The position numbers and the translations under genes are program-made. A DNA stretch of 64,000 bases, from positions 64,418,001-64,482,000 of the forward strand of contig OZ249436.1 in the NCBI GenBank assembly GCA_965235115.1, given 5' to 3'. The DNA is from Laetmonice hystrix. Taxonomy: Eukaryota. Of this stretch, positions 6,501 to 53,614 are shown piece by piece. The notes beneath the pieces are model-generated. The model was not told the origin of the DNA and made no database searches. It was given only the letters and a program-made list of their open reading frames with translations. The stretch's first letter is position 1. Each line of letters opens with the position of its first letter.

Positions 6501-9500
6501 TGGCTGAGGTCAATACACCTCCGAGCAGGGCAATCGGGCGATAATAGGGCCACCGCCGGGCAAAAACAACCCACAGCATTCCTTCATGGTTATAAACTAT
6601 ACAGCCGGCTTTGGCTGGGGTGGGGGTCGGGGTGGTGTCAAGAAGGCAAGGGGTTTCTAACACCGTATACCACTACCGCCCCAAATCACCATCTGCTTGC
6701 TATAATAATGATAGATCATAACAACAATTTCTCACATTGGTAGAAGACGGACCCACAGCACCCTGATATTTCACCACACCTATTGATCAGGAGTTCCCTA
6801 ACTTTTCATTGTCAGTGTTTGAGCCAACCCACGTGTCACTTAAACCTACACTATTCTCCGAGAACTTCAGTTTATCAAATCGACGGTTACACCGCATGGT
6901 ATCTTCCTCCATGGACTGCCTGGACCGAGTAGGGGGTTGGCCGGGGGCACGCCCCCCCCCCAAAGTTTACTGACCACAGTCTGGGCCATCCAAGGTTGTC
7001 CTGCAGTGGGGTGCGGCAGACAGTGTAGGGTTGGAGGCCGAGTCCGGCCCGTGTTATTTGTGGGCCAGTAAGTTGGGGCCGGGCGCTGACGGGCTGTCAG
7101 GCCGGGTTAGCTGTGGGCCGTGGTGCGGCCCGACTTCACAGGCGGGCCCCAATCTACCCGGACTAACACTCCGGCTCAAATATCACAGGCGCAAAGCAGC
7201 GGTAGAGATCAGTAGCAGATAGCATTACAGACAGGGCCAAACAACTGTGCAAAGGTCCTGCTGGCTGCGCGGGTTGCGCACCACTTCAGAGGCCAGCCTA
7301 CATAGCGAGTCCCTGAACCTCACATACCAACCGCCCTCTTCCTACACCAATCCAACCGGAAAGTGGCAAAACCGACTTGCCAAGGTAAACACCAGTGCAG
7401 ATTATGCTACTTTTAAAGGGTGCAGTGTTCAGAACTTGTGAAGCATCCAAGATAACGCTTCGCTTTGGTCTGGGTCGTGTGGAGTACTTCACTCCGCCCC
7501 GACCACGGCCAGGGACGAGCAAGTCGGGGCTGACAGTATTTAAGTCCTTCAACACTTCCAACTTCCGCATTGTTTAAGTTAAGTGATTCCGGAGATGTCA
7601 TGGTGATATATGAGGACGATACGAATAAAATATCATGTGTCTGATGTTACGACAAGAAAGTCTCGTGGCGTGATGTCGAGGGGATAGGAGCGCCGAAATC
7701 CTGCTCTGACAGACTATAAACTTTCAACTTTGCTCTGTGATATATTAAACCCCACCAAATGGGAAATTTGCATACACGTGCGTGACCATGTCCTAAACCG
7801 GTGGCCACAGTGACTGCGGTTTGATCCTTTTAATTTCCTCCTACCCCCTCGCCTATACGGGTGTGTGTTGGGGGGGAGGGGGGTCTCTCTTGGCTGGGAT
7901 CAAAGGGACCGGAGCTGGTACGGTTCAGGGTGGCGGGCGGCAGGGTGGTGGTCGTGATGGTGGTGCTGTCAGGGCCCTCTCACTGGCTGACCTACACCCA
8001 CACTGTCCACACCCACACCACACCCAGTCCTCTGTTGGCCGTCCTCTCACTGGCTGACCGACACCCACTGTCCACACCAAATCCTCTGTTGTCTGCCCTC
8101 TCACTGGCTGACCTACACCCACACTGTCCACACTCACACCACACCCAGTCCTCTGTTGGCTGCCCTCTCACTGGCTGACCCACACTGTCCACACCCAGTC
8201 CTCTGTTGTCTGCCCTCTCACTGGCTGACCCACACCCACACTGTCAACACCCACACCACACCCAGTCCTCTGTTGGCTGCCCTCTCACTGGCTGACCTAC
8301 ACCCACACTGTCCACACCCAGTCCTCTGTTGGCCGTCCTCTCACTGGCTGACCCACACCCACACTGTCCACACCCAGTCCTCTGTTGTCTGCCCTCTCAC
8401 TGGCTGACCTACACCCACACTGTCCACACCCACACCACACCCAGTCCTCTGTTGGCCGTCCTCTCACTGGCTGACCTACACCCACACTGTCCACACCCAG
8501 TCCTCTGTTGGCCACCCTCTCACTGGCTGACCCACACCCACACTGTCCACACCCACACTACACCCAGTCCTCTGTTGGCCGTCCTCTCACTGGCTGACCT
8601 ACACCCACACTGTCCACACCCAGTCCTCTGTTGGCCGCCCTCTCACTGGCTGACCCACACCCACACTGTCCACACCCAGTCCTCTGTTGTCTGCCCTCTC
8701 ACTGGCTAACCCACACCCACACTGTCCACACCCAGTCCTCTGTTGTCTGCCCTCTCACTGGCTAACCCACACCCACACTGTCCACACCCAGTCCTCTGTT
8801 GGCCGCCCTCTCACTGGCTGACCCGCACCCACACTGTCCACACCACACCGAGCCCTCTGTTAACCGTCACATGCTATCATCATCATCCCAGCTCCTTCCT
8901 CCCCCCCACCCCCACCATAGTCTGTGGTAATAACACCCGGTCCTTGTTCTCTGCCCACTGACCAGTCACAAATTGTCAATATTTGGGTCCTGCCGAATGG
9001 TGGCTGGTATTAGCGGCACTGCATGCCCTCTCTTTGATTCCACCCTGCCCCCTCCTGACCCGCCCCGTGCCCCAGGAAGCGATCAGCCTCCCGTTTGGCC
9101 GGGATCCAAACGCCCGTTGTCACCACTGCCTTCTTATCACACAAATCATACGCGTTTTATCTCAACTTTGACAAATTCCGTATACTGCACCTGTCTAACC
9201 GACTCAAACGCAACATTCTTTCGCCGCGGTTCCTTATCGCTGATGGCCGACTTCAAAAGGCGGTAATAAACTGATGGAAGTTGGGAATCTTTGAGCGCTG
9301 TCCCTGTCATTCAGTGGGCAGCTATATCACCAGTACGGGCCAGTCAAACATGCTAATTGTTCTCGGGCTGAGTCGTCACAAGGCGACCCACATCAAACAT
9401 GTTCGTTTCTATGTGACCTGATGTATAGACCCGAGTCCTGGCTCCGCTGCTTGCTTCCAATCAGTCCACGGCGGCGGACAATTTCTTTACACCAAACTGA

Positions 9501-18500: not shown

Positions 18501-21500
18501 GATATGCATACATCAGAGCCACGCAGATCAGAAGAACAATTTAAATCATATAATCCCCGTTCAAAGACGAGGCCATACTCATCATGGGCCACTTCAAATG
18601 CTGGCCCCAGAACTGCTTTCTTGTAGCTTGGTGGCAAGCCGCTCTGACCCTGCCTGCTGCTCGCTTTTTTTCCTACCCCAACAACCACTTTATGCATGGC
18701 TAATCATTTCCACTATTCACCACTTTCATCGGGGGGGGGGGGGCAGTCCTCCTCCCTCCTTCAACCCCTCTGCCAAACAACGTGTGGATCGGCCTCTAAT
18801 TAGCCAGAAATTTCACGACCAAGATGGGGCAGCAGGCTCCTACTTGGACCCACTGTTTGCTGTGATCATTCCGACGGCCGTCCCTATCTCGTTTGAAGCT
18901 TAGCTACTGAGGCATGGTTCCAGAGTCAGCCATGTATCAAGTGTCGCTTGGGCTAACCGTACTACCGCATCTCCTTGATCCCCTTCACCACTGCAGGACG
19001 AGGTTAAACTGAACGTACTACCACTGCATACGTCGGCCACAGTACTCGGACCGAGCTCAACAACAGTTACTGGCAAAGACGGTCAAAGCTCAATATATTG
19101 TACATCGTCCCATTTGTTACAGCTCTACGTATGTACTACTTGCAGCGTTCTGATTGCGGGCCATCCCTTTACAATGACACTTCTTCGCCACTCACAACAC
19201 ACACTTTAAATGCACTGTCTCCTCTAATACCGCTTGCCCCCTTGGCAATGAAGGCAGTCCTTTTTTGCCACCGTGGTTTGATGGCTGTGTAATTCTGAGC
19301 GTGCTTGTGTCTCCATTGTCAGAGCAATTAGATTGCCTCAAAGTATATAGTGTCTCGATTCAATCACTATCCTTTCATCTTCCGAGGATGGGTTCACTAT
19401 CAAAAGGACCCGACAGAAAACCTATACAGTTGTGGCATGGCTTCACACCAATTTAATCCCCCCACATAGATTTCTTTATGCCGTCCTTTTTCTCTCCTGC
19501 CATATTTCATGAATTACAGTGGTCCCCTTCTAAAACACGACTTTCTCCTGTTCTTTGATCTTGCGGATCCATCTCTTCTCTTCACACATTTTATCAGATA
19601 CTTGTCCGCTTTGACACCTCTCACATTTCAAACAATATGCTTCCTTTCATCTGGAAAAAAAGTAATTTCAATGTGCGATCATTTCCTGGATGATCTCATT
19701 TATTTCACGGCTGCCTCTTTACAAATACCGAATTTCACATCCTTTTATCTCCGGTAAAAACCAATATGGCTGTGTACTTTTTGCCTGCTGTTCCCTCCGT
19801 TTACCAATTATTGCCACCCTCGTCAACAATTCTACTGAGAATACAGTAAATTTAAATGCCTCTGTGCTCTTTCATCTTTGATAGAAAGCCAATAGAACAG
19901 CAACCCCTTTTCGAAATGCCGTCTGTGCCCACTTCAACAAATTTACATTAAACTCTCTCCCAAATATCAATTTCAAAACACTTCTCTTTCAACATTGCCC
20001 ATTAGTGCTTATTGATCTTGTCCGCTAACTCATCAATGAGTTGGTGCTGCTCGGATCTCTCCCAAGTCACACCAGCCACTAATTGGCAAATTGCAGGCGG
20101 ACCTTCAAATTATCAGCCCACCCCCTACCTTCCCTAGTCATTTCACTCTTCCCATGGTATTAATCCAATGTGTTTATTGCACTGCAATCGCCGGTATTTC
20201 TCTGGTTGAGATTTTTAAGGATTTCCAATTGTGAGTTCGCAGTGATCCAAGCGGCGAGTGAGCCTATTGTTGCAAGGCCTGCAATAGAGTGGCCGTGGTC
20301 GGTGGGTCGTCCTTGATCATTTGGTGTGGGTGCCGGCTGGATGACAAGGCGCCAGGCTCTGGTAATGGTGGGTGTACGCCCGCCTGACGACAGGCGTCGC
20401 TGACAACGACCATGGCAACAACAACAGGCGCCACATCACAGGCGCCAAGCTCGGCCCCATTTTACTGGGTGCCTTCAATCAATGACCTGGACCCATCCAG
20501 AACTGCTGGAAGCAGCCACAACTAGAACCAGTTTGGTTACTTGTCATCTTGTTGGTTCCTGTGCCACCTTTACTGAGCCTTTCCATTTAGACAGACTTAC
20601 TCATGTACTTCCATCAAAACGTTCACTTGAGGAATGATTTTCAAGATGCTGAGAGGAAACACATTTCTTCATCTTGTTACATTGATCTATTCATTCAAAG
20701 TAGCAAATGAAAAAAACACCTAAACGTTATTCTGCTCGGCTGACTAATTATTTGATTCATTCAAAAAGATGTGCAAAGGAAAGGTACTTACTTTTCATTG
20801 GTAGGGTTTCCTGTCGGTTCGTACCGCAAGCTTACTCCACTGTCAATATTACTAGTTGCGTCCATGCTCTTTTTCGCATTGGAGCGTTTGGCGTCTCGTG
20901 AACGCCCCCTCAACACAGAATCGTCCCAACCCCGTGGGGTGGTGACGTGAGGGTCCCGTAACCGCGAATCGCGGTAATATTGCATACTCTGTTGTTGTGC
21001 CTCCAACTCGAGGATTTTGCTAGATTTCGAGTCTTTACTCAGATGGTGATGGTGATGGTAATGGTGAACATGTTTATGGTGGTTCTCGTCGAAACCGTAC
21101 ACACCCGATTTGTCCTCACCCATGCCACTGTCAAAGGAGGAGGTGGACATAAAGTGGCTGCCATCTTTGTCTTTTGTCCGCTTGTGGTGCGGCTTGTTGA
21201 ACACAATCCCTGAAACATTGGGCGAAGGGCCAGCAATGGGTCTCCGCCCAGAGAAACTTCTATCACGGTCCCTGCGCTCCGGAGAGTGCCTCCCAGGTGA
21301 GCGGCTTGGGGTTTGACCAGCCGAACTGTCCCATATCCTAGAGCAGTGTTCCTCCAGGATGCTCTGAGCATTGTCCTCCCGCTCCTGCTCGGCCATAGCA
21401 GTTGCCATCAGCTCCATCATGGACACAGACTTGTTGTGTGCCGACATTGATGACTTGTTCAGGTCTTCCTCATCAGTCATCTGCTAAAAAATAACCAGTC

Positions 21501-22260: not shown

Positions 22261-25200
22261 TTGCGTTAGCGACCAATTGTCAATAACAAAACACACATTA
22301 GAATAAAGCAGTGTTGCTAGCAGTGGTGATAAATCTGCGATTATTGGTCACCTTTTCCGGACAGTAAATGGTACGTCAGGTTCCGTACGCTGAATGTGAC
22401 TGTCTGATGTTCTGTCACCTTCTATAACTGATCCCCTGAATTCCCTGACACCACTTCGATCCGTTCACGACACAACAATGCCACCTGGTGGGCACTTCTA
22501 GCTTCAGATTCCTGGCGTGTTGGAGACGGTGGCGGAGTGTGCGCTGGTTAGAGAACTAGTGCCGCTTCATCCCCACTACACCACCACGCGGGCTAGGACT
22601 TACCTGGGCTCTGAACAACAATGGTACGTAGCTTCTACTCTACATTTCAGGTAAAGAAAACCCACAGGGAACAGGGTGAACGAATCATGACTAGATTACA
22701 CCTGTCTCCCGGCACTGCTGGACACAAGACAGACTAAAAATAGCATGTAAGGTTTGGCACTATGCAAACATTATGGCAGCATCCATCGCTATGGATGATT
22801 TCACGGGGCTAACTGATGAATGTGAAAGCTGTATGCTACAGGAAATCACAGTGACGGCTAGGTCATCAAGCGACAGTTTTAACTACCTTCTCAATCTGCT
22901 GTGTTCCCCCAGCTGTCAATCTGGTGGGGACTGAAGCCAGAAAGCTAGACAGGTGTCAAACCGCTCAGCCTGTTCTCTACAGGCTTCAGGTAAGGTTGGC
23001 GTCGCCTGGCTGGCCTTGTTACCGTTGTTACAGCCATCATAGACAGGGATAATTCACTCACCATTCGCTTGTTGTTCACGTTCTCCGCAATCACATCGAG
23101 CTTTCTGCTAACGTTCAGATTATTATAACAATGGTAGTTCCTGTTGTGGTGGTAGCTGCTGTCATGTGTCATTGCTAACTTCCCTCCTTTCGAGGTTGTA
23201 ACGCCCATGTTCTCGAGACCGGCTTTGAGCGCCTGTCGGATTTCATTCTCCACGTTCTCCGACATGACATTACCGACGGTGACTGGCATGACCCCGTTAC
23301 CGTTAGCCAGCATGGTCCAGGCGTGCTGGTCCTCCATGTTGATGTCTGTCTTCTGGTGGTTGGCCATGTAATACTCCGTCCCTTGTCGGTGAATCACCTT
23401 AATCAGTGAGATACTGCTGCCCAAAACAACAGAGTCTCCATCAGACATCAGCTTGAGCATCTTCATCATGAACCCACGCTGCCGCCACCAGTCACCGCCC
23501 TGCAGGCAATAACTGCATCACTACTACAACACTCACTCCAACAATGATGACACTGCGGCTGAACTGGGGTGGACTCGGTTCGCTGAGTGTGACAGCAGCC
23601 GCGGGTAAATATAGACCGCTATCGCTGGAGCCACCTGTCCTCCACCCAAACACAGCGCCGCTCCAAGTCTGTGAGCGATTGTTTATATATGACGCCGGTA
23701 GCTTGTATCACCGCCACCGTACCTATACTCCGGCTAACACGTTCGTTGTTGACGTGCTGCTTGTCGACTCCCTTCGGCCGTGCCTGCCAGCCTGCCTGTC
23801 ACAAAACGCTCATGTATGCTTTATAGTACTCCAACCTCTTCTTTCACTCTTCATGTGATCTCTCCACAAGCGACGCCGGCTCTGACAGTGATAGCCACAA
23901 ACGTGGCGGCCTCCTGTCATTGGCTGAGGTGGCGCCACAGTGCTGCCACCTTCGGGCGAAGCGTGCGTCGGTGCCTCGTTAGATTGGCTGACTGGCTGAG
24001 TCACTCTCTCACGTGGGAGCTTGGCCTCAGATCGTCCCGACAACCATTGATCTGTGAATCCAACTCTACATGTGCAGTGTGCATGACATTTGTTTGGACC
24101 TAGAATCCCGTCCCCAACGTCCACATTATATCCCTAACCCGAATCCTTTAGCAGAGCCGACATTCTTTTTGACATCACCTTAAACTTCGAGTTGCACGAG
24201 GCCAACCACGAAATCCTTCAAAGTCAGCCTGTCCGCATCCGTGGCTTGGACATCGCACTCGAGTGTGTGGAAATTCTGTTTGGGAGATCACATGAAGCCA
24301 CGTTTGGCTATTAAACGCCCCTTCTGGGAACCGGTTGAGCTTTTTAAACCGCCGTCTGTGTGGGCCTACCTGTGCTCCCAGGAATCAATATGTGTTCAAA
24401 GGAGGGCCGCCGGCTTTGATGTGTATCTGATGGCACGATGCGGGGTGCGCATAAAGCGGCCGTAATATCCTTTACCAGGGTATCGGTAATGTTGGTCAGC
24501 AGCCCCGACACCCAGGGCCTTTTGATCCACCCAGGGCAACTCTCAAAGCCACACACAGAGCGCCATCTACTGCTGGCCTGTTTCCTCTGATGTCAACTTC
24601 AAACCAAACCTAAATAGGTTCTAAATCAATCGACAGGGATCAAGTCTTTTCTCATAAAATCAATTAGCTTCGGTATCGGCGGCACTACGCATTTCACAAA
24701 GTTGACACTGTGACTTTATGACGGCATAAAACCACTCGGAATTCCGTTTATTCTGACCTATGTTAGTCCTTGATAAAAATCGGATGTAATCTAAAGATAA
24801 GCCCCAGTGTGTGAACATGGTCGGGATAATCCTTGGCCCAGGAATGATGCTGATCGCCTCGCTCGAGATCCCCTTACCCCACACCTGGGTATGACATTTA
24901 TATAACACACCCAGTGAAATTCTGTGCTTCCATGTACAAATCTGTCAGGACGCCTTGATCTCAGAGGAAGTAAGATCACAGGAGTATGAAGCCTTTCACA
25001 AACGGCTTAATTCCTGACTTTCCCCCTTAAATCCATCTTGTACCAAACAAGTGTTTGCGTTTTTATCCTTTAGCCTTCCTTCTATGCCGACAACCTCCCC
25101 ATTACCCCTCAGCAACTCCCCAAGCAAGGCTGAGGCTACAAAAGCAGGCGAACAAAGCTGACTTTCTTTGTAGTTGGTTATCCTTCCTTAGATCCCTCAA

Positions 25201-28200
25201 GATTAACACAAAAACACTGAAGCTAATCCAGCAATCATCACCATCTAACTTTGTGTCAGGTCGGCCTCGCGCGTCCACTGCCTTGTGATTGCCACTGCCA
25301 GGAAAACTACTAGAGGCCTAATGAGTGGCCTCATTTTCATTTTCACTTCCACAAATACATCTCTTAATCCACCTTCAAAAAGGGGCCTGCAGCTACGGCT
25401 TTCATCCCTCGGTGTTTTCGCCATGCCTCGTCATATGGCCGTCCTTCAGCACGCCAATGTGCCTCTAATGGACGGCCAAAAGATTCCAAATTCAAGGCGC
25501 CTGCCCGCACCGCCGATTCTTAGAAGATTAAACAGACCAGAATATGGAGATCAACTTCAGTCCGCCTCAGATTCGGCGGCATGACTCGCGCTAAACGTGC
25601 GAACACAGAGACTAAACATGGCCAGCGTTGCTCTCACAAAGACTGCCACATAAAACCGAATCAACTCGGCTGGAAGATAAAAAAAGACAAAGAGGCGGAC
25701 GAAACAGCGTTTCCTGTTTTCAGGCGTTTGAATTTATATATTCTGCATGGAAGTTTACCGTTGAGAGGCCCGATCATGTGAGCAGGCTTTCATCTCTGTA
25801 TCTTCTTCATGCTCATTGTGAGGCAGCGAGCGCGAGCTGGGCGAGGCAGCTTTCTTATGCCAACAACATATCCTCAGCTGCTGGTCCATAGCGTCGGCGC
25901 CATCGGGCCCCTTTCATGTCATCGCAATTTTTTCCCATTTTTATAATCCAAATGTGTCTTTTCAGAGAAACAAAGTGTTGGCTCTCTGTTTGCAAATAGC
26001 GCCTGTGCAGTCGGCTAGATCCTACTGTCAAAGGAGATTGCTTTTCCGTCATAAAAGCTATCGAATCTCCTCCCTGGAATTAGGATGATGAGCTCGACTA
26101 TATTCGCATCATCATCAAATTTGTGTTCACCAAACAAAACGTATGATACTGTAACAAAGTACAAAGTTCGAGTAGAGTATACAGATAGTGAGAGAAGTAA
26201 AGATAACACTTGCCTCATGGTAACCTACCTCCGGTGTCGTCATCATCTCTACCAGGTGTTTCATCTTGTCCTGTTCGTCCTTTACTTTGTCCAGGCGCTC
26301 AATTAACATTGTGGCGAACTTGGAGGGGTCAGTCTCCGCCACATTACGATCTTTAGGCGCACGGTCCGTACGCTGCAAGAAGAATAGGTGTAAATAAGGT
26401 ATAAATTCATATAGAAATCTGGGATCGCACCCCTCTCCCTGCCTTGCAATTATCTCATCATAACAAATAACCAGGGTGGAGATATGACAGACTCTCCACA
26501 GAACCCAGGTTCCTAATGTGATTCTTTTATCTGAAACTCCAACCTTACGATATACCTAAAACATAATCTAACACCTTCTTACACCTGGAGTTGTTGCGAC
26601 ATGTTTTTCCCTAACTGACCACCAAGACGGTCTGGTAAGCGGGTATGGCAGCCTGGCAGCATCATTGTTGATGTCATGCAATCCATTACTTCATCAATCC
26701 CACACAGTTGTATACAGAGTGAAGTAGTATCAATACACCTGCCTTCATAAAGTACACCGCCATGCACTGCACACTGGTTAGACTAGCAAACTTATACTTC
26801 AGTTTTAACACAAATAGAGGTACTCTTCAGGCGTCTCAGTTACCTAAGTGGGGAACCTTTGGCGAAGACTTTAATTTTTAATTTGAAGAGTCCCAGTATT
26901 GTTCATCCTCAGCATTATTTTCTCACTTGTATTTTCCAAAGGTCACAGGAAAAAGTTTAACGAATCGCCAAATTCATTTCAGGATTAGCCACTGATGATA
27001 GAATTGAGCTCATTTTGTTGTCGGACATGTGTTTATATGTTACTAGTGCACCACGTGTATCGTGAACTCAAACACTGGGAGTCCTGGCGTGCAGCCAGGG
27101 GATTGGCTGGCGGGCCGTCAGTGGATGACTGGATACTGCGCTGCCCGCCCCGTCCGAGCTGTCCACCCTGGCTTCACAGCCATAACAACTAATTTCAACA
27201 TCAAGGGTATCAGTGGGAAGGGGCCAGCTAATAGTGCGCTCTCACGTCCCCAGAGTGTTGACCTGACCACTGGATCTGGCACGCTTCATTTCACTCATAA
27301 CTTTTACAATATTTCATTAGGCCAACTGTGTCAGACTTAATCCACCAACTCAGCAGCGATAAGCACATTTTCGCCGGGCACCCATATCCACAGGGCCTAC
27401 TCAATTATAACATCCCATGACCAAAACCTTCATACACATTCCATGTCCTGGCGCATGTAGAGAACAAATGCATGCAGATTACCATCAAAGCCGACAATGC
27501 CCTTCCGTGTCGGCACACTACTCGCGGACAACAATGAGCATATGCAGATGAGGCAACAACTTCAAAGGTGCCGCCGCACTTGGGGCATAAAAGGCCCACT
27601 CATAGCACGCATGAAGTCAGGGGTGCAAGCCTGCACGGCACAATGGTGCTCACTGTACGGGCCCAGATGGCGACAACACCACCACTGCCGCACCTCAATG
27701 CTGCCTTGCAATTATCAGTAAAACACCACCGGCTTCACTCTACTTGGTATTAACACCACTCTGCTCAATTTAGTGTGTATAATGAAAAATTGATCTGACT
27801 GCTGAAAAGTTGCAATTTGTGGGCTGGCAGCTCAGCGGCGGGTAATCTCATCAGGGCTGTCAATGAGTGACAGGCTCGCCATATGGACGGGGGTGGGAGG
27901 GATCCACACTGGGGGCCGATTATAGGCGTGACGAGGATCAACCATTGTCCACCGACCCAATATTCACAAAGTGTGCCGTTCCAAGTGGAGTCTCTCATCC
28001 TTTCACATTATATCGGATCCCTAAGTGAATATTCACCGAAGCAGGGGCAAGAAAAGGAAGAAACCCAAATTCAGAACTTTTAGTACGGAACTCTGCTATC
28101 AACCTACACCATGAAACTTTTTAGACACGCTCACCTCGAACTCAGTCCCGATAATGGTAAAAAAAATAGAGTACTAAACATATACTACTTACCGGAATGA

Positions 28201-52200: not shown

Positions 52201-53614
52201 TTTATAGCATGTAATCACAGCATGTTCTTATTCAAGGATTTCCTGGGAGGATTGGTGAGAGTGGCTATAATATTCCCAGAAATATAGCCTGGCAGCTCTG
52301 TTTGAAGTGATCCGAGCAGTCGGCATAGATCAAAGGCCCGAGTGGTAGTGTTCGCCTGGGGAGTATTGGGGTGGGGGGGGGGGAGGGTGTGGCTCTTTAC
52401 ATCAGCACCATCTACTGATCCTGTTGCTGTGATCAGCCACTCTGGCTCCTAGTGTACACATGATCAGCACCACAAACGCCTTAAGATTCCTCACAGAACA
52501 AGTCTCTGGTTCTGTCTTCATACATGTCAAAATTATCTTGAAGTGAGCAGGGCAGAGAGGGCACCCTTCGACTCACAAAAGACAAGGTGAGCAAGATCTA
52601 CTTGCAAGGTCTATTGGATCTAGAGTTTAAAACAAATGACTAACATCCTTTTCATACATACCCTTCTGGTTTCTTGAAATGACTGTTGGAAGATATCCGG
52701 GAATATCGGGTGGCCATAAGTGCCGATTCTGTCAAAGCAAGTGTGCCCGGTGTTTTGAATATATCTTCCTGTTTGAGCTCTTCTCCCTCCTGTACAGTTG
52801 GCAAGGGCCCAGACATAGGACGTACACTATTAGATCCACTAGATGTGTTACTTGTTTTGGGGCTGTCACCACCCATTTGTACATATTGCACATACAAATC
52901 TGACTTGAGGAACAACGGGTAGGTGTCGTTCCTCATTGTTTCCTCGACTTCTTTCTGTGCTTCATCGAAAATTGATTGGTTGATATTTTCTTTTCTGCTT
53001 AGAAGGTCAGCCAAATTTCGCTTGATGTCAGCTCGTAATGAGAGCTGGTCACCCTTGATATATTTCCTATATATTAACTTTACTAGACTGTGTATTTTGG
53101 ATTCATCCTTTCCAGGCACCATTTTTAGACCGCGGCAGGCGAACCAAAAATCCAGAGTATATGCACATTGTTCCTGATCAAGGAACTGCTTGAAGAGTTT
53201 GACACCATCGCTGTCGTCCAACAGGTGCACCAGGTTCTCCGCCCACTTCAAGTATGGCGGTGAGCTGTTCTCTGTAAATGGCGGTGAATTTGCTGCACTT
53301 CCCTCAGGTTCAAAGCCAAGGGGAGCGTTCACTTCGTCACCATCCACTCCAGCAAGCGAACAGCTCAGAGAGGTGTTGGTCTTATCCAGGTTGGACCTTC
53401 GTGGTGTTGCAGCCGGTGAGTTGTCGCTTCTGTGAGACTTTCCAGAGGTGTGGCTCTTGGCAGACAGGTGACTCTTGTAAGAGCCGCTACTCCGCGTTGA
53501 AGTTCCTCCGTTAGAGTGCAGCTCATTCTCCTCCCCCGGTACAGGGGGTCTTGGGGCAGTCTCGGTGAAGTTCCCCCCGGAGTCGTTGAGGAATTGCTGC
53601 ACCTCTATACTCAT
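3438..53614 (-). CDS. Axin: Axin (Wnt destruction-complex scaffold), spliced CDS join of 10 exons: 52662-53614, 41598-41744, 28193-28310, 26229-26372, 20792-21480, 15918-16040, 13136-13369, 11708-11845, 11280-11453, 3438-3564; 948 aa
   Basis: All junctions are GT-AG, phases match (2,2,0,0,2,2,2,2,2) and the summed length is 2847 nt. The Axin hallmarks appear in the correct order: [33 protein letters not shown]3 helix, [23 protein letters not shown]. Confidence 0.96.
5072..5107 (+). repeat. (GGGGGT)n G-rich repeat, potential G-quadruplex
   Basis: Six G-runs of 5-6 nt separated by single T. Confidence 0.85.
7974..8862. repeat. CA-rich minisatellite, about 15 units of mostly ~56 or ~68 bp
   Basis: Recurrent gccctctcactggctgacc(t/c)acacccacactgtccacaccc[acaccacaccc]agtcctctgttg. 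Confidence 0.95.
11280..11453 (-). CDS. Axin: Axin coding exon 9: N-terminal half of the DIX domain ([38 protein letters not shown])
   Basis: Acceptor gtatgtgtttgcag, donor CAG|GTACGT, 174 nt; canonical DIX sequence. Confidence 0.96.
11708..11845 (-). CDS. Axin: Axin coding exon 8 ([45 protein letters not shown]); symmetric, possibly skippable
   Basis: Acceptor gatgtgtttcag, perfect donor CAG|GTAAGT, 138 nt, open in the phase 2-2 frame. Confidence 0.82.
13136..13369 (-). CDS. Axin: Axin coding exon 7 ([33 protein letters not shown])
   Basis: Acceptor atgattccag, donor AG|GTCAGT, 234 nt, phase 2-2. Contains the conserved QDP.MPP..PN..QLEEA.RRL motif. Confidence 0.93.
14969..15018. repeat. 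Perfect 25-bp tandem duplication containing 14-bp palindromes
   Basis: (cgtacggccgtacgtacgaccacca)x2. Confidence 0.95.
15918..16040 (-). CDS. Axin: Axin coding exon 6 ([10 protein letters not shown]...SSSGQG)
   Basis: Acceptor tctttttttag, donor GG|GTACGT, 123 nt, phase 2-2. K|VLAWMME resembles vertebrate KIMQWIIE. Confidence 0.9.
20601..20648 (-). CDS. Axin: Candidate 48-nt micro-exon (N)[15 protein letters not shown](E)
   Basis: Acceptor gtgtttcctctcag, donor GA|GTAAGT, phase 2-2, no stop. Confidence 0.4.
   Translation of the reverse strand, partial: HLENHSSSERFDGST
20792..21480 (-). CDS. Axin: Axin coding exon 5: beta-catenin-binding segment ([18 protein letters not shown]) and His-rich tract
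   Basis: 230-codon ORF; NAGNAG acceptor tttttagcag; donor AA|GTAAGT; contains [13 protein letters not shown] and NIDSGVS; phase 0-2. Confidence 0.95.
22218..22258. repeat. (CTG/CAG) trinucleotide microsatellite, about 13 units
   Basis: Perfect tgc repeats. Confidence 0.95.
22604..22639 (-). CDS. Axin: Candidate 36-nt micro-exon [12 protein letters not shown]
   Basis: Perfect donor CAG|GTAAGT; acceptor ttttctttacctgaaatgtag; phase 0-0, no stop. Confidence 0.4.
23062..23499 (-). CDS. Axin: Candidate unannotated Axin exon: cassette of 438 nt (phase 0-0) or alternative first exon from ATG 23469
   Basis: Long protein-like ORF; donor ATG|GTGAGT at 23061 in phase 0, matching exon 5; acceptor ttattgcctgcag at 23500 also in phase 0. 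Confidence 0.6.
23650..24030 (-). promoter_or_regulatory. Candidate internal promoter in the intron between coding exons 4 and 5
   Basis: On the minus strand: TATATAAA 23682-23689, CCAAT at 23919-23923 and 23983-23987, AP-1 TGAGTCA 23997-24003, E-box CACGTG 24010-24015; CpG-rich. Confidence 0.45.
24395..24420. promoter_or_regulatory. Two oppositely oriented TCF sites flanking one Helper site
   Basis: TTCAAAG 24395-24401, GCCGCCG 24406-24412, CTTTGAT 24414-24420. Confidence 0.55.
24560..24573 (-). promoter_or_regulatory. CTCF-like motif
   Basis: GCAGTAGATGGCGC matches CCASYAGRKGGCRS at 13/14 positions. Confidence 0.5.
26229..26372 (-). CDS. Axin: Axin coding exon 4: GSK3-binding helix (RTDRAPKD...[20 protein letters not shown])
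   Basis: Acceptor ttcttcttgcag, donor GAG|GTAGGT, 144 nt, phase 0-0. Resembles vertebrate EPQKFAEELIHRLE. Confidence 0.95.
28193..28310 (-). CDS. Axin: Axin coding exon 3 ([39 protein letters not shown])
   Basis: Acceptor cttcttcttacag, donor CCG|GTAAGT, 118 nt, phase 2-0. Resembles vertebrate DGIPPY..KQHRREM..PHIP. Confidence 0.93.
35290..35890. promoter_or_regulatory. Intronic TCF plus Helper composite enhancer
   Basis: GCCGCCA 35361 with CTTTGAT 35375; ATCAAAG 35810 with GCCGCCG 35819; CTTTGAT 35871 with GCCGCC 35882; additional sites near 35295 and 35587. Confidence 0.6.
36371..36691 (-). CDS. Axin: Candidate unannotated Axin exon: cassette of 321 nt (phase 2-2) or alternative first exon from ATG 36630
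   Basis: In-frame ORF with coding-like, C/G-ending codons ends at a perfect donor AG|GTAAGT (36370), in the phase exon 3 needs. The acceptor gtcgacag is weak. Confidence 0.55.
41598..41744 (-). CDS. Axin: Axin coding exon 2 ([38 protein letters not shown])
   Basis: Acceptor ttatttttacag, donor GT|GTAAGT, 147 nt, phase 2-2. Resembles vertebrate [35 protein letters not shown] as I recall it. Confidence 0.95.
44822..44835 (+). promoter_or_regulatory. CTCF-like motif
   Basis: TCAGCAGGTGGCGC, 13/14 match to the consensus. Confidence 0.5.
46184..46221. repeat. 20-bp tandem duplication
   Basis: ccagcagaacaaatgaccgg followed by ccagcagaacaaatgacc. Confidence 0.85.
49775..49811. repeat. Short tandem duplication with 20-bp period
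   Basis: ctgccccattttcagag occurs twice. Confidence 0.8.
51250..51550. mobile_element. piggyBac-type non-autonomous element (MITE), 293 bp
   Basis: TTAA at 51250-51253 and 51547-51550; inverted termini CCCTTTCTAGTC and revcomp CCCTTTCCAGTC (11/12), with degenerate extension to about 24 bp. Confidence 0.75.
52662..53614 (-). CDS. Axin: Axin coding exon 1: start codon, tankyrase-binding motifs and RGS (APC-binding) domain
   Basis: MSIEVQQF...[10 protein letters not shown]...[10 protein letters not shown]...[27 protein letters not shown]...[11 protein letters not shown]. Start context atcaccATG; donor GG|GTATGT at 52661. Confidence 0.97.

Follow-up and report, generated by a model that had tools for sequence, protein, structure and literature searches.

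Axin is a core brake on Wnt signalling, and an extra coding exon under selection changes what the Axin scaffold can assemble. The locus studied here, in a 64-kb stretch of annelid DNA (hereafter the window), raises the question of whether intron 4 of an Axin gene holds such an exon and, if so, how it is used: as a 5' exon it would remove the APC-, tankyrase- and GSK3-binding parts of the scaffold, and as a cassette it would push the kinase- and substrate-docking sites apart. We find that the candidate exon is conserved, unannotated and lineage-specific, and the sequence comparisons set out below favour a role as a 5' coding exon over one as a cassette or in a nested gene.

An ordinary Axin gene with an open frame in intron 4

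Evaluating the window with Pfam, we identified the host locus as a single, ordinary annelid Axin orthologue on the minus strand, with PF16646 and PF00615 followed by PF08833 (E 1.3e-15, in the ORF at 20791-21483, minus strand) and then PF00778, all on the same strand and in that order (Table 1). The gene thereby possesses the same parts as the described Axin, Axin1 and Axin2 scaffolds (RGS, GSK3-binding helix, beta-catenin-binding motif and DIX). Exon 1 has one named relative, a fragment from Capitella teleta at 62% identity, with many other contigs scoring higher. Published Axin primers for Platynereis had no match in the window at 3 or fewer mismatches, so the DNA is not that of P. dumerilii. 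The exon for the GSK3-binding helix is conserved in relatives, its GAG/gt phase-0 donor also being found in L002, L007 and L008. Within-species variation in the beta-catenin-binding exon includes a non-synonymous SNP at 21162 (G107S, outside the binding motif, in two of the three run assemblies) and a synonymous SNP at 20806. Downstream of the Axin gene, ORFs on the plus strand at 7860-8710 lie in a GC-rich, strongly C-skewed tandem repeat and translate as repeated units of one peptide.

The candidate exon sits in intron 4, between the GSK3-binding exon and the beta-catenin-binding exon, within an open frame of 190 codons (23517-22948, minus strand), and runs for 136 codons from its first ATG (23469) or 135 from a conserved ATG (23466). 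The initial annotation had described an in-phase ORF ending at ATG/GTGAGT whose donor and acceptor match exons 4 and 5, in a segment that it did not recognise in Axin. Direct reading of the sequence confirmed the ORF, on the minus strand, and reading of the flanking exons placed all of these junctions in phase 0; the unrecognised segment proved to be a coding exon that matches no known protein, an assignment backed by conservation, substitution pattern and gene position. The length of the ORF is unremarkable, several other ORFs of 167-174 aa occurring in the 64-kb window with none of them exons, and because that length does not exceed chance in the window, the evidence for the candidate exon is its conservation.

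Table 1. Features of the Axin locus and of the candidate exon in intron 4, with positions given in the window.
Feature	Position	Strand	Details
Tankyrase-binding segment, PF16646	within ORF 52655-53614	-	exon 1; Pfam E 7.5e-10
RGS (APC-binding) domain, PF00615	within ORF 52655-53614	-	exon 1; Pfam E 4.1e-25
GSK3-binding helix exon (exon 4)	26229-26372	-	cag/CGT at 26372, GAG/gtaggt at 26229; donor phase 0
Two sense-strand CCAAT boxes, CAGCCAATCT (23990-23981) and CAGCCAATGA (23926-23917)	23917-23990	-	proposed promoter element
TATA box, CTATAAAG	23819-23826	-	about 355 nt upstream of ATG; window only
Short motif, GCTGCTGTCACA	23586-23599	-	common to window and L003; CTGTCAC core also in L002
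Acceptor-like site, ttattgcctgcag	23500-23513	-	followed by GGC; exon start 23499; 33 nt upstream of conserved ATG
Candidate exon	23062-23499	-	AG/.../GT bounds; 438 nt = 146 codons; phase 0 at both ends
Second in-frame ATG, non-conserved	23467-23469	-	directly upstream of conserved ATG
Conserved ATG (M of MKML...), proposed translation start	23464-23466	-	cross-species identity
Conserved 89-aa core	23200-23466	-	5-species alignment with 52 invariant columns; 65-88% identical to window
Conserved C-terminal motif (..C.NNLN...)	23062-23139	-	invariant C, N, L, V, I, E, N columns
Splice donor GTGAGT, phase 0	23056-23061	-	ATG/GTGAGT; last exon base 23062
Beta-catenin-binding exon (exon 5)	20791-21480	-	cag/ATG at 21480, AAG/gtaagt at 20791; acceptor phase 0
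DIX domain, PF00778	11201-11620 (about 11.4-11.2 kb)	-	Pfam E 4e-14

The open frame is conserved and evolves as coding sequence

We searched 1.84 billion representative proteins exhaustively with HMMER and recovered only four true relatives of the encoded peptide (P0001-P0004; 142-198 aa, 64-78% identity), and a word-indexed search of 5.8 billion proteins returned the same four. They come from four other species, each being a raw ORF call on a eukaryotic contig, and all four extend a few residues beyond the exon, where the GTGAGT donor is translated as 'VS'. The segment is lacking from described Axins and is absent from every annotated protein among the 1.84 billion representatives. Four further candidates (P0005-P0008: bacterial VCBS, WD40-like and repeat proteins) were rejected as matches to a low-complexity 'DGxxVVxGS' repeat. 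Gene position is shared as well: in both long contigs a PF08833 ORF follows on the same strand, 1.3 and 2.0 kb further downstream, and the window and L002 are colinear from the GSK3 exon through the candidate and beta-catenin exons to the later ones.

Comparison at the DNA level, which covered four species (the window, L002, L003 and L006) with five species in the protein alignment of the core, revealed that conservation switches on at ATGAAGATGCT and off at ATG/GTGAGT, with flanks that are unalignable. The donor junction itself is identical in all four species, and protein conservation ends exactly there. Between these limits the open frame is kept in the orthologues, which carry no frameshift or stop, and the substitutions bear the mark of purifying selection: pairwise Nei-Gojobori estimates gave pN of 0.18-0.30 against a saturated pS of 0.64-0.86, differences at third positions were 2-3x those at positions 1 and 2 (22/21/68 in one example), and every indel in the four species with DNA preserved the frame, from 3 to more than 150 nt, the length differences of the linker being in-frame indels of up to about 50 codons. 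The 89-aa core, at 65-88% identity to the window, is better conserved than Axin exon 5, which is 47% identical between the window and L002. Within the species, genomic contigs from three runs of one sample showed two SNPs in the candidate exon, at 23239 and 23347, both synonymous (I87 and T51), and 0 indels, versus 11 SNPs and 4 indels in the 794-bp intron just downstream.

We weighed these results against the reading that the sequence is untranslated, being instead a conserved non-coding element, a chance ORF or a transposon relic. Chance ORFs of similar length do occur in the window, and the peptide has no Pfam, PDB or fold match, both of which would suit that reading, but codon-periodic substitutions, saturated synonymous sites and indels that are all in frame speak against it, as do the limits of conservation, which coincide exactly with an ATG and a consensus donor, and the presence of a single copy in a 627-Mb genome. 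Given such patterns, we regard the untranslated reading as effectively refuted, with only a very slight chance left to it, and interpret the candidate as a genuine protein-coding exon of the Axin locus that is kept by selection and is restricted to one clade.

The encoded peptide resembles no described family

The peptide is laid out as a conserved stretch, a variable loop, a second conserved stretch (WT.L.NGNGV.P.TVG...ENVE.EIR.AL.AGL..MGV), a variable Asn-rich linker and, directly following that linker, a conserved C-terminal motif (..C.N.LN...KL.VI.EN). Searches by homology and by structure, both of which the initial annotation had proposed for this peptide, found no match in Pfam, in the PDB or among annotated proteins: Pfam assigned no family to the ORF, a feature search of the ESM Atlas gave no usable match, and a profile search of the PDB recovered only designed helical repeat proteins (E 0.002-0.06), which we judged spurious. 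AlphaFold2 models were of low confidence, with pLDDT of 37 for the whole exon and 42 for the 89-aa core (from the 5-sequence alignment). These weak models suggest that the core may consist of five beta-strands followed by one helix, and since they give no confident fold, it is conservation that argues for calling this region a domain. We therefore treat the peptide as most likely an orphan N-terminal module of about 135 aa, made up of the core, the linker and the C-terminal motif.

The exon is restricted to a small annelid clade

We assessed intron 4 in two more distant annelids, L007 and L008, in which both flanking exons lie inside the locus so that the intron is fully sampled, and a six-frame profile search of the whole intron with filters off found no trace of the exon in either. 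In two further relatives, ORFs had been called in the right place and none was matched in the exhaustive protein search. The absence of the exon from intron 4 of the distant annelids implies that a small clade, itself poorly sampled, is either where it arose or the only place where it survives. An origin from a transposon or repeat was rejected, as the sequence is single-copy, with its own locus the only match in the 627-Mb assembly, and has no Pfam match.

Being lineage-restricted without a detectable ancestor, the exon offers a clean case of a new module born in an essential signalling gene. A bolder reading is that this annelid clade evolved a new folded module with its own promoter, apparently from non-coding intron, and thus came to encode a 'headless' Axin naturally; we hold this tentatively, as a proposal with somewhat more against it than for it.

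Elsewhere in intron 4, a 20-nt element (GTTTGAAGTTGACATCAGAG, 24585-24604) is identical at 19/20 positions to L008:6899-6918, in intron 4 of an annelid that lacks the exon; it was not found in L002, L003 or L007 and may be a chance match.

The proposed start codon and the acceptor sites lean against a cassette

Where translation of the exon would begin is marked by an 11-nt block, ATGAAGATGCT, which encompasses the conserved ATG and is identical in the window, L002, L003 and L006, with an A at -3 in 4/4 species. Upstream of this ATG, the in-frame open stretch of 10-18 codons is unalignable between species. The leader between the AG and the ATG likewise varies from 0 to 11 codons and is unalignable, such that conservation starts sharply at the ATG.

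Acceptor sites upstream of the ATG differ among species in both strength and phase. By a crude pyrimidine/AG score, the acceptor-like site of the window falls at the 84th percentile of all AGs in the gene, and its counterparts lie at -27 from the ATG in L002 (phase 0, 98.6th percentile), at -28 in L003 (out of phase) and at 0 in L006. The site at -28 is the only strong acceptor in L003, L004 and L005, where the sole phase-0 AG scores at the 50th percentile; for the L003 species the -28 site was confirmed in three independent run assemblies. As this acceptor is out of phase, splicing from a phase-0 exon-4 donor, which is the phase of that donor in every relative checked, would shift the frame into a stop.

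These sites bear directly on whether the exon is an in-frame cassette of full-length Axin, in which case an additional 146 aa would separate the kinase- and substrate-docking sites. A cassette would be served by the phase-0 ends and the length of 438 nt, and by phase-0 acceptors with pyrimidine tracts and stop-free leaders in the window (-33), L002 (-27) and L006 (0); it would also suit the sequence directly upstream, which has no alignable conservation and looks like unconstrained intron. A plausible in-phase acceptor with a stop-free frame is present in those three of the four species but not in L003, L004 or L005, however, and the unalignable leader and the sharp onset of conservation at the ATG likewise speak against a cassette. 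In three species a strong acceptor-like site, irrespective of frame, precedes the ATG by about 30 nt, which suggests a short non-coding leader exon and a leader intron; an internal promoter would suit this layout no less than a cassette would.

A weak pointer against constitutive inclusion comes from one of the sequencing runs. Run X4, from the same sample and with 59 M letters of contigs, contains 37% of exon-5 words and was not listed for 22900-23620, which does not necessarily mean that the sequence is absent there. X4 is probably an RNA run, since 59 M letters are too few for a genome run, and on that footing it hints that the candidate exon may not be constitutive. Of the two uses that the initial annotation had left open, the evidence leans away from the cassette, which it put first and which is in our estimate unlikely, and towards the first exon.

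The splice partner is probably exon 5 of Axin

If the sequence is a 5' exon, its donor needs a partner, and exon 5 is the only conserved block downstream of it before the later Axin exons (window versus L002). The phase-0 donor ATG/GTGAGT fits the phase-0 acceptor of the beta-catenin-binding exon in both the window and L002. We searched 55 homologues of exon 5 for spliced protein fragments in which exon 5 is preceded by exon 4 or by the candidate exon, and all were single-exon ORF calls.

A different partner would be used if the sequence were the first exon of a separate orphan gene lying within the Axin intron, the donor of which would lead to a short, poorly conserved terminal exon within the 1.6-kb interval before the beta-catenin exon, giving a protein with nothing in common with Axin. 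The conserved ATG and possible promoter motifs would suit such a gene, and a terminal mini-exon of less than about 15 codons would escape tblastn and blastn comparisons, but no second conserved block lies between the candidate exon and exon 5 (window versus L002) and in all species the donor has the phase that the exon-5 acceptor requires. Both contigs that are long enough to show its surroundings place the ORF inside Axin, and it has no other location in this genome. We consider a nested gene improbable, and more so than a cassette.

A predicted short Axin isoform

The reading that we favour is that the candidate is an alternative 5' coding exon giving rise to a short Axin isoform in which the orphan domain would be joined to the beta-catenin-binding motif and DIX, and to this specific proposal we assign about an even chance. 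We infer the promoter, translation start, splice partner and function of this isoform as follows. Transcription would begin within intron 4, at an internal promoter with CCAAT boxes 450-610 nt upstream of the ATG, and the transcript may lose a short leader intron (about 23721 to 23500) whose end is some 30 nt ahead of the ATG. The conserved ATG (23466) would serve as the translation start, and the invariant GTGAGT donor would be spliced in phase 0 to exon 5 (23062 to 21480) and on to the remaining Axin exons. In the predicted product the orphan module would be followed by the beta-catenin-binding motif, the linker downstream of it and DIX; missing from it would be the RGS (APC-binding) domain, the tankyrase-binding segment and the helix that binds GSK3.

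A protein of this kind could bind beta-catenin, and could co-polymerise with Dishevelled or with full-length Axin, while giving no support to phosphorylation; for that reason it would be expected to modulate the destruction complex, probably as an antagonist. Its orphan module may confer an interaction partner or a localisation specific to the clade. Axin in Platynereis has been treated as a putative Wnt target (PMC5996498); by extension, an internal Wnt-responsive promoter would be a plausible, if speculative, feedback device.

Partial Axin proteins have been studied in other settings, and these allow the predicted isoform to be placed. Axin constructs without RGS or without the N-terminal third, assayed in Drosophila and SW480 cells, kept DIX-dependent puncta and lost Slimb recruitment (PMC7346726). 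Engineered Axin-deltaRGS and 'Start After RGS' from that study are like the predicted short isoform in being without the RGS region and with DIX, and by analogy the isoform should keep puncta polymerisation and be defective in destruction-complex function. Whereas those Axins are laboratory constructs, the predicted isoform would be naturally encoded, would also be without the GSK3-binding helix, and would bear a conserved orphan N-terminal module. Precedent for a natural partial Axin protein that changes Wnt output is AXIN1-295aa, which is made from circAXIN1 in human gastric cancer, competes with the full-length scaffold and activates Wnt signalling (PMC8642992). AXIN1-295aa is the N-terminal (APC-binding) part and comes from a circular RNA, in contrast to the product proposed here, which would be the C-terminal part with a new N-terminus and under germ-line selection. 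More generally, isoforms made from alternative first exons and internal promoters have the same layout, with a small coding first exon in a large intron and an in-phase join. The candidate exon differs from these in being long (135 aa), in encoding a conserved orphan module, and in belonging to a small clade rather than being deeply conserved or annotated.

The region upstream of the exon and its putative promoter

Putative promoter elements were evaluated in the three species with enough upstream sequence. The NF-Y-type motif RRCCAATSR occurs once on the sense strand of each, at -459 from the ATG in the window, -611 in L002 and -591 in L003, relative to a background of 0.03-0.12 per kb per strand, an argument that is post hoc; a MAFFT alignment of the CCAAT regions gave no extended block. 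In the window, a TATAAAG lies about 100 nt downstream of the second CCAAT, and neither L002 nor L003 matched the pattern TATA[AT]A[AT] within 1.2 kb upstream of the ATG. The short motif GCTGCTGTCACA emerged from a k-mer comparison of the 197 nt that precede the ATG. A DRE-like TATCGCT motif that had seemed common to three species was dropped, as it is polymorphic within one species (L004).

Further upstream in the same intron, 1.6-1.9 kb from the candidate exon, lies a conserved non-coding block of about 300 bp (25105-25420, minus strand) that matches L002:7108-7441 at about 74% identity, synonymous sites between the window and L002 being saturated. It holds TCF/LEF-like motifs (TACAAAG at 25172-25166 and CTTTGTT at 25157-25151), and no conserved donor site was seen within it. 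From its sequence, this block may be a Wnt-responsive enhancer or part of an alternative promoter.

The same intron also carries a structural polymorphism at 24050-24109, where contigs from all three genomic runs reveal a second allele in which 9 other letters replace 60 bases.
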